DNA of 32,000 nt from Zygophlyctis sp. KS116 (Eukaryota; Fungi; Chytridiomycota). The stretch covers positions 22,672 to 54,671 of the forward strand of contig BAAFSQ010000046.1 of the NCBI GenBank assembly GCA_054661495.1, in the 5' to 3' direction. Numbering within the stretch: position 1 is the stretch's first letter; the number at the start of each line of letters is the position of its first letter. Positions 4,096-13,768 of this stretch are shown here, in pieces. Under the pieces are notes generated by a model. That model was not told where the DNA came from. It did no database searches and saw only the letters and a program-made list of their open reading frames with translations. A program made the translations under genes and the position numbers.

Positions 4096-5313
4096 TCATG
4101 ATCTTCTTCTAAAGAGAGCAAACAAAAGTGCCAGAATTATAAACGGCTGTGATTTTGAAAGTATCCTTAAAATCACTGACAATGGCGATTGTCCAAAATG
4201 AGTCCCAACCGACTGATTTGATGAAGCTAAAGGAGTCGGTTTACTTTCCAGAGCCTTTAAAGCTGAAGTATCTTCCACTTTCTGAACAATATCCTTTTTC
4301 CCTCCTAAAACAGCTGTTAAAAGTTTAGAAACAGGAGGACTTTCATTTCGTTTATTATTCTTTAGCCACTTGTGTGCTTTAGCCAAAGAAATCGGAAATG
4401 CCTGAGTAGTAATTAGAGAAACTACAGATTTGGGTAACCATCCTTGTAAATCCCCATCAACTACTTGTGTGACAAAACAAGCCCCCTCCACAGACGGGTG
4501 AGGTTCTACCAATATACCTGCAATATTCGCCAGCATTCTTACGTCTCCTGCATCACTAATGTAAGAAGGATGAGAAGAGATGGAAGTTGTAACATTTAAA
4601 AAAGAATGTGGCTTAATTTCATCTAGAAAAGACATCACCAAAGCATCTCTTGGAGCTGTAGGCCAAAACCCTCTTGTTTTCATATACTTTTCTCTTTAAA
4701 AGAAATAATTACCTGAATAGAAGTCATAGAGTCCAAAACCTCTAAAACTCCTGCACTTGTACAAATCTCATCCCATTCTGATCTTTTACTTATATCAGAT
4801 AAATAGTCAAATGCCTCTTCAGGACTTGTATCCTAAAAATTACTAAACCTTCTATACCATTTCAACCAGAATTCTGAATGTAAAATCGCATTTTTTCTTT
4901 TGATGCACTTGAATCTTGTACACAGAGTCTGATTTACTGGAAGATCTAGTCAAAACCAAGTTCCAGACATCTTCTTCTCTATCTCCTACAGGACTTTTGA
5001 CTGTATCTGCCATTTCCAAAAACTGAGCCTTGAGAGCATTGAATTTTTCCAAATTCCCTGGATCAACTTGCTTTGTCTCTTGAGTCTCTTGGACATTTAG
5101 AGACTTGATAGCAGTGGATGCTGGACTTTTCACTGGCGCTGAAAGAGTCATTGTCTTTTCTGATACATCGGCTTCATACAAGCGATACAAAGATATAAAA
5201 GAGAGTATGGCTAGAGATCCCTGTGATAGATAGAGAATAGTTTTCTCTTCAAATACAAACATTGATACAAAAATCGATGTGAAACTGAGAGATAGAATCA
5301 CTAGTTCAATCAT
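4096..5313 (-). CDS. START (StAR-related lipid transfer) domain protein with hydrophobic segments at both termini
   Basis: Introns 4833-4857 and 4687-4712 join the ORFs: SPEEAFDYL..RSEWDEIC, WPTAPRD, VDGDLQGWLPKSVV. Two N-terminal hydrophobic helices and a C-terminal IILALLFALFRRRS tail. Confidence 0.8.
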
Positions 5314-7774: not shown

Positions 7775-9599
7775 TTAACCGCTTTTGCTTTTATTCAGAC
7801 AAGAATATTTATGATTTAAAAAATTACTCCATATTTTAAATTCTTTAAATCTTTTTGTGGATTTTAGGATTTCTAGAAATTCTAAAATCTTTACAATAGA
7901 TTCGAGTCCAACTGGATTTTCAAGAACGCGATTTGCGTCCAGTCTTGAAAAAAAATACTTGTATTCATTACATGCTTTGAGAATGTCTTGCTCTAAATGT
8001 GATTGAGTATTATATCCAAGAATTAATGCAGATCTAGTCATTCCAAAGTCTATAAGTTCAAGGTTATGATTTAGATCAGCAATCACGTTTTCAGGCCGAA
8101 CGTCTCCATGTATCAATCCATAATTTTCATAAAAATTTTGAGCTAGATTCATGTATTTGACAGATATGCCTCTTTCGAATTCTGATCCAAATTCACAGGT
8201 TTGTAAAAGAACATCTAATGGGATTCCAACAATCTTTTTTTGGCAGATTACCATTGCTGCAGCATCATATACTACTAGCCTATTAATCCGGCTTAAAGCG
8301 ACAATCTCATTGTAAAAAGATTCCCGAGCTTGTCGATCAGACCTGAATAGAAGCTTGATAACCAATTGATCTTGAGGAACTCCTTTAACGTAGCCATTAT
8401 ATGTTACTCCATAGCCTCCACGACCAAGCTCTGATGTAAAAATGAAATGCCAGTTAGTAATTTTGATTCCTGCGGGCAGCATTTCCTTTGAGTTTTTCTT
8501 TGAGCGTAATCGCAGGAAATCTAATTTGACAGAATTAAAAGCATCCAGAATATTTTCCACTTCAAATTCTGAGTAATATTCTCGATATTTAGTTAACCAG
8601 TTTCTTACGCACTTTTCGTTATGTGGCACCAATGGACATTCACTTGCTGCATTAACAAGATCCCTTAGAAAAGCATTGATCACTACCAAGCATTGAGACT
8701 TCGAAAAGTTAAGTTTTATAGCCTTATGAATATAATTGCTCATGAATATTTGAGATCCTTGTTCTAATGGGAAAATGCGAGCTTTTAATACATCCGCTGT
8801 ATGCTTGGACAAAAAATCATTACGACGTTGATCACCAAAGCATGTCCGAAAATTAAGTAAAACATTTTGATCTGATTTTGAATTCTTAATTATCAATATT
8901 CCCATTTCCTCATCATAATCAACCAGCTCCATATTCATCCTGAAACGATCAAACTCGTTTAAATAGTCCCTTTGGAAGAAATAAAGTCTAAACTCCAAAA
9001 AATCCTGTACATTGCAATCAGTACATCCTCTAAAAATAGCACATTTTGGATTCTTATCCACACATCCCTGATAAAGAATCACATATTTGTCACCAGATAT
9101 ACTAAATTCCAAAGGCAATACAGAAATCGGATTAGGATGCTTTTTCAAATTAATGATTTTTTGTCGTTCAAACTGAGCCAGTACAAAATTCCTCTGATGA
9201 CTAGAAAGTCCAATTTTCTCGTGAAAATCCATCCAACATTTCAATATCTTTCCAGATATCCCAGAAAAAGGATATTTGAGTACAGTCTGTAGAGCAAAAT
9301 CCAAATACTCTTTAATTTCAAGATGATATTTATCCTTATCAAAAGCATTGATATAAGAAGCCGCAAAAACAACGTATGCGGGATTCAATGGATCTTCCAA
9401 TGCTTTTTTAAATATATGATTTCCATGTAGCAAATGATCCGAACTAGAATTATTTATCAAATATTAATACCGACTTATTGGTTGAAGCATTGTTGATTGC
9501 TTAAACGGTTCTAAAGATTTCTGATAATCAAAGTAGTTTTCACTAATCATCATCTTCTAAAAGTAGTAGAGTAAACGGAATGCCCACGTGCAGATGCAT
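7775..9599 (-). CDS. Orphan protein with C-terminal protein kinase-like domain
   Basis: LGRGGYGVTY (Gly loop), VIK, alphaC E, HGDVRPEN, IDFG. The track ORF starts at TTG 9460; introns 9444-9470 and 9557-9587 extend it in frame to ATG 9553 or ATG 9599. Confidence 0.72.
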
Positions 9600-9762: not shown

Positions 9763-12700
9763 ATGTTACCAGTTTTGGCTCTATATTTTTACAAGACTGT
9801 AGTGTCTGATCCAATAATCCTGACAAACGGAGAGTATATAAGTTTAATTGACATGTTAGCATTTCAATTACTGGAAATATTCCTGTGAATGGATCGGCTC
9901 AATTTTTAGGAATCACTTATGCTGAGGCGGCTCGTTGGGAAGATCCGCTGATCAAACCACTTTCATCGGTTGTTGCTACAACTGAGCCTAAAGGGTAATT
10001 TCATGGTATTAATCCCAAGATGTCCGCAGATATGCGATTCAAATATAAACTGCCCAAGATATATCTCGGAGGATTGCTTGCAACTAAATGTTTGGACTCC
10101 ATTCACAAGTTTTGAGAATTTAACGACTTTGCGTCCTGTGCTGATATACATTCACGGAGGCGCCTTCAAAACTGGGCATGGGTATCTAGAGGAATTTGGA
10201 AATTTAGCAAAATCATTAGATTCTATAATTGTTGGCTTTAATTATCGACTATCAATCTTTGGATTTTTTCAAAAGGATTTGAAGTTTGAAAACTTTGGGA
10301 TTAAAGACCAAAGGACTGCGCTTCAATGGATTTACGAAAATATTGGCAAATTTGGTGGTGATGTCCAAAAGGTAAATAATATTCAGTATTGAAAATAGAT
10401 TTCAGTTTTAGGACATAGTGCTGGAGCATTATCAGCTCTTATACACCGTGCCCATCCTCTGACAAGATTCATTATGAATAATATGATCCTAATGTCTATT
10501 CCAGCTATTCAATTTGCTTCTGAATACGAATCAAAGAACACTATTGGTTCATTAAATTCAACTCTTTGTGAAAGTATAAATGATGCTGTACTCTTTGAAT
10601 GTTTGAAAAATCAATCAATGATGCGTCTGCTTGTAGCTGGACAGGAGAAATTTGATGATAACCAAGTGATGATGACTAAAGCATTTCCGCCCAGAGGTAA
10701 ATAATCTATAATAAGATTAGTCGATAATTTTGACATTTTGGATCATCCATTTGATATTCTGAAAAATGCGACATATATGAATGGAACGAACGTTATTATG
10801 GGAACCACCTCAAATGAAACGTATCTGTTTCTCAATAAGCTCTATCCAGGAGCTATATCAGCGCCTATATTTGATATCATTTTGTAAAACATTTTTTTGA
10901 TTTATAATTTAGACTATCGTTATTTGGATCGGAAAAGGCCTCGATTAAAGATAGGTACCCAAACGCGGAAATATCTACAGGGGATCAGAATCAGAAATCT
11001 AGGCTTACACAGATAACTTCTGATGCAATCTTCACATGTCCTTTAAAAAATTCTCTGAATGAATCGTTGATAGCAGCAAATGTTTATACTTACTACTTTG
11101 AAACTCCTTTTCCTGGACAAAAAGATTCTTCCTCTGGTAATATTTGTGAAGGAACCGCATGTCATGGTACTGATTTGGCATATCTTTTAGATATACCTTT
11201 TCAAGGTAAAATATTTATTCGAGAATTAATTGAAAGAGGAATATAGTTTGATTTCACTCACATTTAGAAAGTTTATTTCTAATTTTTTACTATCTGGAAA
11301 TCCTAGTTTGGAAAATAATACATGGGAAAAAGACGGACTAATGCGATTTGCTTCTGCGAAAATAACCTTTCAATACAATCATCCCCTTGAAGAAACATGT
11401 GATTTTTGGAGTAAAAAACAGGATTTTTATGTGCAACTGGATCCACCGACTTTTGCAAGAGGTTATAGCTTTATCGAAATCTTTGGCCTCATTTTTTTTG
11501 TGATTTTTATCTTTGTTCAGATTGCCCTTTTAATATTTTCCTGGAAGAAAAATCAACGAATCTTAAAAATTCAGAATGCAATCGAGATATACGATCACCA
11601 GGCTCTTAATCTGTCGTCTTGTTTTTTAGAAGATACTCACAAAAACGGAGAAGATACGTTTTATTCTGTTTTAAGCACTCCGACTCCTTTAGAATTATCT
11701 TGTGAAAACTTAACTGTAGAATATTCAAACACTCGGGTGTTAAGTGCTATTACTGCAAGTTTCATTCCTGGATCATTAACAGCTATTATGGGGCCATCAG
11801 GCTGTGGAAAAACAACTCTGATTACTGCTCTAAGGGGGCGGCTCAAACGGTATAGCAATGGAGATATTTACCTGGGATATCAAAATATTCATGATATTTC
11901 TTTTAATGAAATGAATAGTTTAATTGGATTTGTTAGTCAGCACGACCCTCCTTTTTGGGGTCTTTCTTGTAGAGAGCTGTTGACATACTATGCTCATCTT
12001 CAGGTAAAACATTTCTCTAATATTTAAGTCGCCCACCATGACAGATGAGGAGATTTCTCAGAAAACTTTGGATGTGATTAAATTGATGGAGCTGTCAGAT
12101 TGCTGCGATATTGTTCTTACTAAGCCTGGTACTACAAAAGGTGGACTCTCAGGAGGACAGCTCAGAAGGGTCGCAATTGCAGTAGTACTCTTACAAATGC
12201 CAAGTGTAATATTACTTGATGAGCCTACTAGTGGCTTAGATTCGGAGCATGCATTTGAAGTAATTAAAGTGTTGTCAAATCTGGCTGCACAAGGTCATAC
12301 AATAGTTTGCACCATCCACCAACCTCGCATTGAAGTATATCAGCTTTTTTCTGACGTTCTGGTTCTCACGAAAATGGGTGTCCTATATCATGGATCTCCT
12401 ACAGGTGCAAATGAATATCTTGAAGCTTATTCCGAAGCAAATCTTACTTTTGATAAAGCTCAAAATCCTGCAGATTCCTTGTTAAAATTGGCATCTAACT
12501 ATGAAGACTTACTTTCATCCAGTTTATTCAAAGCCAATGATGGAAGTACTGCGAACATTTCCTCCTCATTTGCAGCAACACAGACCACTCTGATATGCGA
12601 CTCCGTATATGAAAAAGCACTTCCCATAATTGTTGAAGTTCAAGGCGAAAACTTTAGTCTGAAATCTAAACTGCTAAGCAATTTATCTCTCATAGAACTT

Positions 12701-13768
12701 TATCTTGATGAATCGATTTCCAATTGCCAAGTTCCTGCAGTTTTGGGTCTGAATTTATCTGATATATCCCTTAACAAAGATATTAGAAGTATAACATCCG
12801 AACATTTTTCAATGGACATTGATAAGGATATGTATGCTGCTGACAAGAGAATTAAAAAAATTGCAGCTGGACGGAGACTTTTTATTGAAATCCAGACACT
12901 TAACGCAAGATGGTGGAACATTAGACCATTTTCAAGAAAGCTTATGATGCTTTTTATCTGTCTAATCACTGCAATCATTGTAGGAATAATCCATCGACGC
13001 CCTTATTTGGACATTACATCTTTTGAATTGCAAATGAAGGGAATTTTTTTAGGTACGAATTATATATTTTATCTCATCACAGCATGCATAGGTCTACCAG
13101 CTATTAAAAATATAGCCATATCCTATGATTTTTACCTAAATAGAGACTTGTACGAATTCGATCTTATGAATGGAATATCTTCTCATCTTGGCTTTTTTAT
13201 TCATAGAATGTATGTATCCAGTGTCAATTCTAACTAATTTAGAATTTACGAGACATCAGTCTCTTCATTAGAGGCCTTAATTACACTCATTATAGGAACT
13301 CTGGTATTAGACTGCAACCCAAATCGAATACTTCCTTCTCTTACAATATTCCTCGCTTATTACAACACTGTCGCAACATTTTTCACTTGCCTTTTTTCAA
13401 CTAGACTGGGAGTTCCAGAAGCAAGATCCATTTCATTTTTAATTCAGGCATTATTCACCATCACTAATGGGATATGGTTAACCCATGGCGAAAGCCCATT
13501 TTATATCGTGCTTGAATGGATAAAATATATAAATCCTCAATACTGGGCGATTTCTTCTTTGATACATCAACTTTTGTACTCATCTGGCAAGTGTGTATTG
13601 ACTGGGAGTGGAGGAAAATGCTTAGTAGCAGCTGGAGATGCTTTTGAAAGTCATATTGGCCTTGTGGATATTTCCTCTTCCACTTCAATATTGGTTTTGA
13701 TTGCCATATGGACAATGCTAAGGATAGTTCAGTACATTATATTGCGATCAAATGAATTAAAATATTAA
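9763..13768 (+). CDS. Carboxylesterase (type B) - TM - ABCG half-transporter fusion protein, ~1251 aa
   Basis: Removing introns 9834-9859, 9995-10019, 10372-10398, 10697-10720, 10884-10912, 11206-11236, 12004-12028, 13053-13082 and 13210-13242 gives one 3756-nt frame. Esterase motifs: FLGITYA, SEDCLQLNVWTP, IHGGAF, GHSAG, GTTSNE, CHGTDL, NFLLSGNP. TM at ~11470-11545. ABC motifs: GPSGCGKT, LSGGQ, LLDEPTSGLD, TIHQP. ABC2-type TMD ending in WIKYINPQYWA. Confidence 0.88.

Follow-up and report, generated by a model that had tools for sequence, protein, structure and literature searches.

A carboxylesterase and an ABCG transporter lie in direct succession at one locus of the chytrid Zygophlyctis sp. 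KS116, which raises the question of whether they form one protein and, if so, whether both halves would act on the same molecule. The locus was analysed within a stretch of 32,000 nucleotides (the window), to which all positions refer. ABCG transporters carry sterols, lipids, hormones and drugs across membranes, and the cargo of most fungal members, as well as of the whole Adp1 type, is unknown; a conserved natural fusion to a predicted-active esterase would point to an ester, or the products of one, as the likely cargo. With a probability of roughly 0.6, we read the locus as one fusion gene for a dimeric ABCG transporter with an exoplasmic esterase, the two activities acting on the same hydrophobic ester.

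Gene model and the junction exon

Removal of nine GT-AG introns from positions 9763-13768 of the plus strand left 3756 nt, or 1251 codons in ten exons, with a single terminal stop (Table 1). Every intron began with GTA, ended with AG and measured 24-33 nt, and the GC content was 14-32% in the introns versus 36% in the exons. An earlier note on this DNA had claimed such a frame, and it was reproduced by splicing and a frame check; the positions that the note gave for the GHSAG motif, the catalytic Glu and His and the Walker A motif were all exact. Exons were searched singly, and for the alignments and the tree they were placed on orthologue alignments as separate fragments. When intron positions were compared with orthologues, an intronless one included, the flanking exons abutted at six of the nine junctions with 0-1 orthologue residue between them; intron 8, which is in-frame and stop-free, was among the six confirmed by this continuity. 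Junctions 2/3 and 6/7 were blurred by a few terminal residues misplaced by the aligner, and junction 1/2 falls within the variable N-terminus; there, 10 orthologue residues separated the two exons, and no residue of the intronless member aligned. Homology thus supports the predicted splicing pattern and gene model.

Table 1 Features of the fusion gene, with positions in the window
Feature	Positions	Strand	Remarks
Introns 1-5	9834-9859, 9995-10019, 10372-10398, 10697-10720, 10884-10912	+	
Introns 6-9	11206-11236, 12004-12028, 13053-13082, 13210-13242	+	
N-terminal hydrophobic segment (MLPVLALYFY...)	9763-9807	+	Putative short signal peptide; read from sequence, weak
Carboxylesterase ectodomain (type B, PF00135)	9860-11409	+	Exons 2-7a, ending at CDFW; Pfam and orthologues
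Oxyanion-hole loop HGGAF	10153-10167	+	Both glycines invariant
Nucleophile elbow GHSAG, catalytic Ser	10411-10425	+	Aligns with GESAG of butyrylcholinesterase chains; invariant in family
Catalytic Glu, within SNE	10816-10818	+	Family SNE column aligns with acetylcholinesterase KDEGSY; invariant
Catalytic His, within ACHGTDL	11163-11165	+	Invariant in family
Exon 7 (junction exon)	11237-12003	+	One open frame spanning esterase C-terminus, stalk, TM0, cytosolic linker and NBD (N-terminal half)
TM0, single membrane helix between esterase and NBD	11470-11544	+	Hydropathy 3.09 over 19 aa
Walker A GPSGCGKT	11791-11814	+	
ABC signature LSGGQ	12146-12160	+	
Walker B and D-loop ILLDEPTSGLD	12209-12241	+	
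H-loop TIHQP	12311-12325	+	
NPADS, counterpart of ABCG NPxDF motif	12464-12478	+	After NBD
ABCG-type membrane domain, connecting helix and TM1-TM6	12908-13768	+	Split by introns 8 and 9
Cys pair in last exoplasmic loop, CVLTGSGGKC	13592-13621	+	Same side as esterase; both Cys invariant in family

The junction itself had been claimed to lie inside a single exon of one polypeptide, and exon 7 was indeed fully open: the esterase end (FLLSGNP..CDFW), the TM helix and Walker A followed each other without a break, and the stretch from the esterase C-terminus to Walker A was free of any stop codon. The same junction was found in relatives. Among independent assemblies of related species, one (L014, 58% amino acid identity) read unbroken from the esterase C-terminus to the membrane domain (TMD), and another (L016, 76% identity) had the same exons with an intron where intron 7 lies; a metagenomic orthologue (P0056) carried the junction in a single intronless ORF of 1191 aa on four contigs, and more than 20 annotated chytrid proteins also had the junction. 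The cysteine of CDFW was invariant across the family (C451 in P0056), and therefore the start of exon 7 belongs to the esterase domain; the end of the COesterase profile (460-515 in orthologue P0003) also maps there. By analogy with cholinesterases, this cysteine probably pairs with a conserved cysteine of exon 6. That two adjacent genes for an esterase and an ABCG protein were misread as one, or that the DNA was misassembled near 11300-11700, is hardly credible against the open junction, its recurrence in the relatives and the conserved cysteine that ties exon 7 to the esterase. Across the junction exon, dN/dS was 0.27 against L016 and 0.17 against L014, and exon 8 also gave 0.17 against L014, the L014 values coming from near-saturated synonymous sites (dS 1.9-2.3). 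Taken together, the spliced frame and its relatives showed that 9763-13768 is one gene, predicted to encode a 1251-aa membrane protein of a family conserved in Chytridiomycetes.

Genes for an M14 peptidase, START, NSRP1, rhomboid, a kinase-like ORF, a MIF4G-like protein, argininosuccinate synthase and TPR neighbour the fusion gene, and no hint of its function was found among them.

Predicted esterase ectodomain and membrane topology

The predicted protein consists of an N-terminal hydrophobic segment, a type-B carboxylesterase, a stalk of ~20 residues, TM0, a cytosolic linker of ~80 residues, an ABCG-type nucleotide-binding domain (NBD), a variable cytosolic linker and a six-helix ABCG membrane domain. 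Exon by exon, Pfam placed COesterase in exons 3, 4 and 6 (114.7, 30.7 and 29.8 bits; cut-off 27), ABC_tran in exons 7 and 8 and ABC2_membrane in exon 10. For the last of these, exon 10 alone scored 18.5 bits, below the cut-off of 26.9, whereas orthologues scored 36-54 bits, above it. Full-length orthologues gave 225-262 bits with the PF00135 profile.

The earlier note had described the esterase catalytic residues as intact, and GHSAG, SNE, CHGTD and HGGAF were all present and aligned with the catalytic positions of cholinesterases. The Ser-Glu-His triad, the oxyanion glycines and the disulfide cysteines were invariant in 13/13 family ectodomains; a conserved disulfide pair was seen in the alignment with butyrylcholinesterase, and the catalytic His is flanked by two family-specific cysteines, C418 and C423. 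These features assign the ectodomain to the type-B carboxylesterase family and predict that it is an enzyme.

Neuroligins and cholinesterases were the nearest solved structures of the ectodomain. Both share with the fusion the PF00135 alpha/beta-hydrolase fold and the conserved disulfide cysteines, and in neuroligins, which are type I membrane proteins, a stalk and a single TM helix likewise come after the extracellular domain. This kinship would suit an ectodomain that is no enzyme in vivo and serves instead as a neuroligin-like ligand-binding, sensing or adhesion module regulating or targeting the ABCG. Neuroligins, however, lack the catalytic Ser, unlike the fusion family, in which triad and oxyanion glycines are kept throughout, so we regard such a role as improbable. 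Neuroligins are also non-catalytic and have a short tail in the cytosol, cholinesterases are either soluble or anchored by lipid or collagen, and none of them is joined to a transporter.

The order ectodomain-TM-NBD-TMD proposed in the earlier note was confirmed by the Pfam order, by hydropathy and by TM0, which was found in every family member about 100-170 aa upstream of Walker A. An AlphaFold2 model of P0056 (moderate confidence; pLDDT 73, pTM 0.53) placed a helix corresponding to TM0 at residues 477-516 and predicted the linkers around it to be disordered. Because the NBD is necessarily cytosolic and a single helix precedes it, the esterase is predicted to lie on the exoplasmic side, at the cell surface or in an organelle lumen. 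From this topology it follows that the esterase and the conserved Cys-pair loop of the TMD would share one side of the membrane. A signal peptide had also been claimed: the hydrophobic N-terminal stretch is present, but it is short and weak here, and clearer in orthologues. N-glycosylation sequons, cited before as a sign of an ectodomain, were rejected as a marker, since their density was equal on both sides of the membrane (9 in the ectodomain of ~515 aa versus 7 in the cytosolic part of ~455 aa) and is therefore uninformative on location.

Transporter half, family distribution and relation to Adp1

The NBD had been described as complete. Walker A and B, the Q-loop, the signature and the H-loop were all present, and Walker A and B, the signature and the H-loop were conserved in the family. 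ABC_tran (exons 7-8) precedes the six-helix ABC2-type membrane domain (exon 10), which is the reverse order. The NPxDF motif is a mark of ABCG proteins; in its counterpart NPADS, the N, A and D were invariant in 18 family members, and all of NPAD was invariant in a 7-member set. The nearest solved structures of the transporter half were ABCG25, Cdr1, Pdr5, ABCG16, ABCG2, ABCG8, ABCG1 and ABCG5. In a search of an orthologue against solved structures, ABCG proteins held the top ranks (E 7e-37 to 1e-29), followed by ABCA3 and ABCA4 (from 4.5e-31) and ABCB (from 6e-28); the orthologue aligned with ABCG2 over the NBD plus the entire TMD. Fold matches pointed to ABCG25, ABCG2, ABCG1 and ABCG5/G8. 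By sequence and fold comparison, the transporter half is thus assigned to the ABCG subfamily.

Half-size ABCG proteins with solved structures (ABCG2, ABCG1, ABCG5/G8, and plant ABCG25 and ABCG16) were the best matches of the transporter half in both sequence and fold. They share with the fusion the reversed NBD-then-TMD order, all ATPase motifs, an NPxD motif that follows the NBD and cysteine in the last exoplasmic loop; unlike the fusion, they start with the cytosolic NBD and have neither TM0 nor an ectodomain.

More than 20 predicted proteins combine PF00135, PF00005 and PF01061, and all named ones are from Chytridiomycetes. Twelve or more genera of chytrids are represented: Spizellomyces, Powellomyces, Geranomyces, Thoreauomyces, Gaertneriomyces, Rhizophlyctis, Homolaphlyctis, Boothiomyces, Polyrhizophydium, Quaeritorhiza and Blyttiomyces, together with Batrachochytrium salamandrivorans, an amphibian pathogen. 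The earlier note knew of no described ABCG protein with such an ectodomain. The domain search shows that it exists in these chytrid proteins, but all of them are annotated as hypothetical or by domain name only. A literature search for the fusion, its accession numbers and the Pfam pair found no paper describing an esterase-ABCG fusion, and neither SPPG_09314 (Spizellomyces) nor the motif GQSAGA was found in the accessible part of the supplement to the 2010 fungal ABC inventory. Among the nearest clusters of the ESM Atlas, which covers clusters of at least 50 members, no large one held both domains.

In the phylogeny of the transporter half, the fusions formed one long-stemmed ABCG clade of their own (SH-aLRT 100), whose inner branching broadly tracked the chytrid orders. 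Such branching fits a single old fusion that was probably inherited vertically.

Adp1-type fungal ABCG proteins constitute Group VII, with yeast Adp1/YCR011C (Kovalchuk and Driessen 2010, PMC2848647). Like the fusion, they begin with a soluble ectodomain that one TM helix connects to a single central NBD, and they end in an ABCG membrane domain of six helices; the function of Adp1 is unknown, as is that of the fusion protein. Their ectodomain consists of EGF-like or CPxGxYC cysteine repeats, whereas that of the fusion is a carboxylesterase with catalytic residues. The same genome contains a true Adp1-like gene (L013) with CPxGFYC-type repeats, like SpunABCG1 of Group VII, and apart from the fusion gene itself it was the closest match to the junction exon in that genome. 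In the tree, the Adp1-like clade (100) was separate from the fusion clade (100), the fusions were not nested in it, and in the free tree it joined some two-NBD ABCGs (93, unstarred); a constrained tree that held fusions and Adp1-like proteins together was not rejected (AU p 0.14). Of the Adp1-type assignment made before, the topology stood, while the transporter half fell in a clade apart; likeness to Adp1 was shown for topology only. These results indicate that the predicted fusion is a real, conserved and uncharacterised variant of the ectodomain-TM-NBD-TMD type of ABCG protein.

Proposed coupling of ester hydrolysis and transport

Half-size ABCG proteins work as dimers, and the ABCG subfamily acts mainly in the export or flopping of lipids, sterols and xenobiotics. 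If the fusion protein dimerises like other half-size ABCGs, two esterase domains would stand above the exit of the transport pathway, and esterase and pump may share one hydrophobic ester as substrate. Because ABCGs are mainly exporters or floppases, the most likely order would be that the pump first brings a lipid-like ester to the outer leaflet, where it is deacylated by the tethered esterase. In the reverse order, the esterase would cleave an external ester, and the lipid or sterol so freed, once partitioned into the membrane, would be handled by the pump. A more specific picture, which we hold tentatively, is that the two ectodomains form a catalytic cap over the ABCG exit, so that the ATP-driven extrusion of a lipid or sterol ester would be coupled with its deacylation in one reaction, as would, in the reverse case, hydrolysis with a subsequent uptake or flipping. 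To our knowledge, the protein would then be the first ABC transporter of a eukaryote in which an exoplasmic enzyme is covalently attached and acts on what the pump carries, and it would offer a natural hint at the class of substrates handled by ABCGs with ectodomains, the enigmatic Adp1 type included.

The fusion could also be real and yet uncoupled, an ordinary ABCG from which a surface or lumenal esterase gains only membrane anchoring, dimerisation or co-localisation while its substrates are unrelated to the cargo. The same genome encodes a stand-alone secreted esterase of the PF00135 family (C195), which indicates that esterases work here without a pump, and the predicted disorder of the linkers around TM0 may also suit this reading. 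Against this, several chytrid orders have retained the fusion with both catalytic sets intact, no split members of the family were seen, and the short stalk of ~20 aa between esterase and TM0 would hold the enzyme near the membrane. On this evidence we consider an uncoupled fusion rather unlikely, and we prefer the reading in which pump and esterase share an ester.

That reading can be tested, as the family occurs in culturable, genome-sequenced chytrids such as Spizellomyces punctatus, and the fusion offers two handles, hydrolysis and ATPase activity, which can be mutated separately in one protein. It would also add a eukaryotic, exoplasmic case to the few ABC transporters that join bond cleavage with transport, namely PCATs and the ABCD thioesterases. 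In peptidase-containing ABC transporters such as PCAT1, cargo hydrolysis is coupled to export (PMC6959990). Like the fusion, PCAT1 combines an N-terminal hydrolase domain and an ABC exporter in a single polypeptide, and it works as a dimer; unlike the fusion, PCATs are bacterial, their C39 peptidase is cytoplasmic and acts before transport, their exporter fold is of type IV and their cargo is peptide. The peroxisomal ABCD transporters ABCD1 and Comatose have intrinsic acyl-CoA thioesterase activity (PMC7838297, PMC6642094). They are eukaryotic ABC transporters in which (thio)ester cleavage of a lipid substrate is part of transport, but the activity resides in their own membrane domain and not in a separate fused enzyme, and they belong to another subfamily and another membrane.

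Gene structure and the junction exon

The fusion gene (9763-13768, +) comprises open reading frames in three frames joined by nine GT-AG introns of 24-33 nt, each with GTA at its 5' end and a GC content of 14-32% versus 36% in the exons. Splicing gave a single frame of 3756 nt (1251 codons) with a stop at the end only; exons were concatenated solely for this check of frame and length, and homology and domain searches were run per exon. Pfam assigned COesterase (PF00135) to exons 3, 4 and 6, ABC_tran to exons 7 and 8, and ABC2_membrane to exon 10. The splice model was checked by fitting the exons one at a time into an orthologue alignment that includes an intronless member. Six of the nine exon junctions abutted with 0-1 orthologue residue in between, including that of intron 8, which is 30 nt long, in-frame and stop-free, and whose retention would add 10 residues present in no orthologue. 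Two further junctions were blurred by a few terminal residues misplaced by the aligner, and junction 1/2 falls in the variable N-terminus. The assembly is 12.7 Mb in size with introns of 24-33 nt, unusually compact for chytrids.

Features of the fusion gene (window coordinates)
Feature	Position	Strand	Basis
Introns 1-3	9834-9859, 9995-10019, 10372-10398	+	GT-AG
Introns 4-6	10697-10720, 10884-10912, 11206-11236	+	GT-AG
Introns 7-9	12004-12028, 13053-13082, 13210-13242	+	GT-AG
Exon 7 (junction exon)	11237-12003	+	one open frame
Esterase C-terminus, FLLSGNP..CDFW	within exon 7	+	sequence
Hydrophobic helix before NBD	11470-11544	+	hydropathy 3.09
Walker A	11791-11814	+	sequence

Because the esterase end, the helix and Walker A share the uninterrupted exon 7, the fusion is independent of splice choice, as the earlier note had argued; the motif coordinates it gave proved exact. 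The Cys of the CDFW motif, encoded in exon 7, is conserved; if the pattern of cholinesterases applies, it would pair with a conserved Cys of exon 6 and so anchor exon 7 in the esterase fold.

A family of esterase-ABCG proteins in chytrids

Exon 7 served as query in a profile-free scan covering 1.84 billion representative proteins; among the matches were proteins aligned from the esterase end through the NBD, in which Pfam found COesterase, ABC_tran and ABC2_membrane together. After two further searches, esterase-ABCG proteins numbered more than 20, and scores fell off steeply below them (962 to 425 bits in one search, 391 to 289 in another). Members include SPPG_09314 of Spizellomyces punctatus (1387 aa) and proteins of S. 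'palustris', Powellomyces, Geranomyces (two species), Thoreauomyces, Gaertneriomyces, Rhizophlyctis, Batrachochytrium salamandrivorans, Homolaphlyctis, Boothiomyces, Polyrhizophydium, Quaeritorhiza and Blyttiomyces. All named members among the matches listed belong to Chytridiomycetes, and as far as these searches reach the architecture appears confined to that group. Quaeritorhiza carries four such genes, two with consecutive locus tags on one contig (in Q. haematococci, P0050 and P0272, HK102_009773 and HK102_009774), which points to local expansion. The Fimicolochytrium model is truncated and lacks the esterase, and groups with the fusion proteins in the tree. B. salamandrivorans has the fusion in two clusters, and no B. 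dendrobatidis entry occurs among the matches listed, for which loss, annotation or the limits of the search may account. The database models P0271 (Polyrhizophydium, 1981 aa) and P0270 (Boothiomyces, 1335 aa) carry additional domains (kinase and ankyrin, or ubiquitin at the C-terminus), probably because adjacent genes were merged, and are unlikely to be true architectures.

The metagenomic protein P0056 (1191 aa) is encoded by a single uninterrupted ORF on four contigs. The junction is preserved in two related DNA stretches, each of an independent assembly: in L014 (58% amino acid identity) the frame stays open between the esterase C-terminus and the TMD, intron 7 being absent, and L016 (76%) has the same exon followed by a 25-nt intron where intron 7 sits. 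The dN/dS of the junction exon was 0.27 versus L016 and 0.17 versus L014, the latter with near-saturated synonymous sites. Together with the size of the family, the intronless member and the two conserved junctions allow misassembly or two neighbouring genes to be discounted; judged from these sequences the fusion is real and a single gene, and we give an artefact next to no weight. Logan and ENA assemblies hold close relatives at 76-85% amino acid identity.

Public protein sets name these proteins only 'hypothetical', 'ABC transporter domain-containing' or 'Carboxylesterase family-domain-containing'. A full-text literature search by fusion, accession numbers and Pfam pair found no published description, nor is the fusion listed in the accessible part of the supplement to the 2010 fungal ABC inventory. 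The earlier remark that a described ABCG with a cholinesterase-family ectodomain is not known thus holds for the literature searched, but not for databases. We class the protein as an ABCG with an ectodomain and TM0, here bearing an enzyme.

Transporter half and its relation to Adp1

The window protein retains the Walker A and B, Q-loop, signature and H-loop motifs intact, and they are conserved in the family. In sequence and fold, the transporter half best matches ABCG25, Cdr1, Pdr5, ABCG16, ABCG2, ABCG8, ABCG1 and ABCG5. In its own genome, the junction exon's best non-self match is L013 (L013:3379-5754, -; contig C23), the genome's Adp1-like ABCG. This gene encodes a signal peptide, cysteine repeats of the CPxGFYC type, a TM helix, an NBD and a TMD and is interrupted by one or more short introns; its product is 64-67% identical to the Entophlyctis, Polyrhizophydium and B. 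salamandrivorans counterparts. A protein named ADP1 is among the relatives of L013, and the L013 repeat is similar to that of the Group VII member SpunABCG1 (Kovalchuk and Driessen, PMC2848647).

In a maximum-likelihood tree of 61 NBD-TMD units (616 columns, quick search), the 20 fusion transporter halves formed one clade on a long stem (SH-aLRT 100), in which the window protein adjoins a metagenomic member (99). The 21 Adp1-like proteins formed a separate clade (100) in which the fusions are not nested; constraining both together cost 7.4 log-likelihood units and was not rejected (AU p 0.14). Therefore, the likeness to Adp1-type proteins proposed earlier is shown for topology only. Branching within the fusion clade broadly tracks chytrid orders, with one group of Spizellomycetales and one of Rhizophydiales, and so suggests a single ancient fusion passed on by vertical descent.

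Esterase ectodomain and possible coupling to transport

The oxyanion glycines, Ser (G-x-S-A-G), Glu (SNE) and His (ACH(T/G)TD) are invariant in 13 family ectodomains, upholding the claim of a retained catalytic apparatus, and so are cysteines at the cholinesterase-family disulfide positions. In alignments, the Ser falls on the nucleophile motif of butyrylcholinesterase chains, the Glu on the acetylcholinesterase KDEGSY motif, and the C243/C254 pair on a conserved cholinesterase disulfide. Solved structures nearest to the ectodomain are acetylcholinesterases, neuroligins and butyrylcholinesterase. A neuroligin-like, non-enzymatic sensor is nevertheless quite improbable given the invariant triad, and both halves look active. 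The genome also holds a stand-alone secreted COesterase gene (L017:885-2640, -; contig C195) with signal peptide, GESAG and a stop after the esterase fold, and a third COesterase on the short contig C677.

In all family members a single hydrophobic helix precedes Walker A by about 100-170 residues. It is the only helix between the cytosolic NBD and the esterase, which places the esterase on the exoplasmic side, where the invariant Cys pair in the final loop of the TMD also lies; the conserved cysteines at disulfide positions agree with this placement. Of the previously cited signs, an N-terminal hydrophobic segment occurs in many members, but the putative signal peptide of the window protein is short and weak, and N-glycosylation sequons are uninformative (9 in ~515 aa outside versus 7 in ~455 aa inside). 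The AlphaFold2 model of P0056 (pLDDT 73, pTM 0.53) has confident NBD and TMD, and the helix that precedes Walker A spans 477-516 there, followed by a disordered linker.

At the level of predicted proteins, these comparisons show that one conserved polypeptide combines an esterase, exoplasmic and apparently catalytic, with a complete ABCG half-transporter. Because a half-size ABCG works only with two NBDs, the protein would dimerise. ABCGs are mostly exporters or floppases for hydrophobic molecules; if esterase and pump share a substrate, the order we favour for this reason is that an esterified lipid-like molecule would be exported and then deacylated at the exit. Alternatively, an external ester may be hydrolysed first and its product handled by the pump. 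That the two halves act independently, with only a common anchor, is less likely, though to be taken seriously. PCATs (PMC6959990) and the thioesterase activity of ABCD1 and Comatose (PMC7838297, PMC6642094) are precedents for ABC transport coupled to hydrolysis; there the enzyme is on the cis side or inside the TMD, whereas the chytrid esterase is exoplasmic.

The region 5 kb upstream of the fusion gene contains an ORF with a weak match to the START lipid-transfer domain (4096-4683, -; 23.8 bits). Another ORF, intronless and 561 aa long (7775-9460, -), has a long unannotated N-terminal region and a divergent kinase-like C-terminal half (Pkinase 30.2 bits, just below cut-off; PK_Tyr_Ser-Thr 28.2 versus a cut-off of 23.1).
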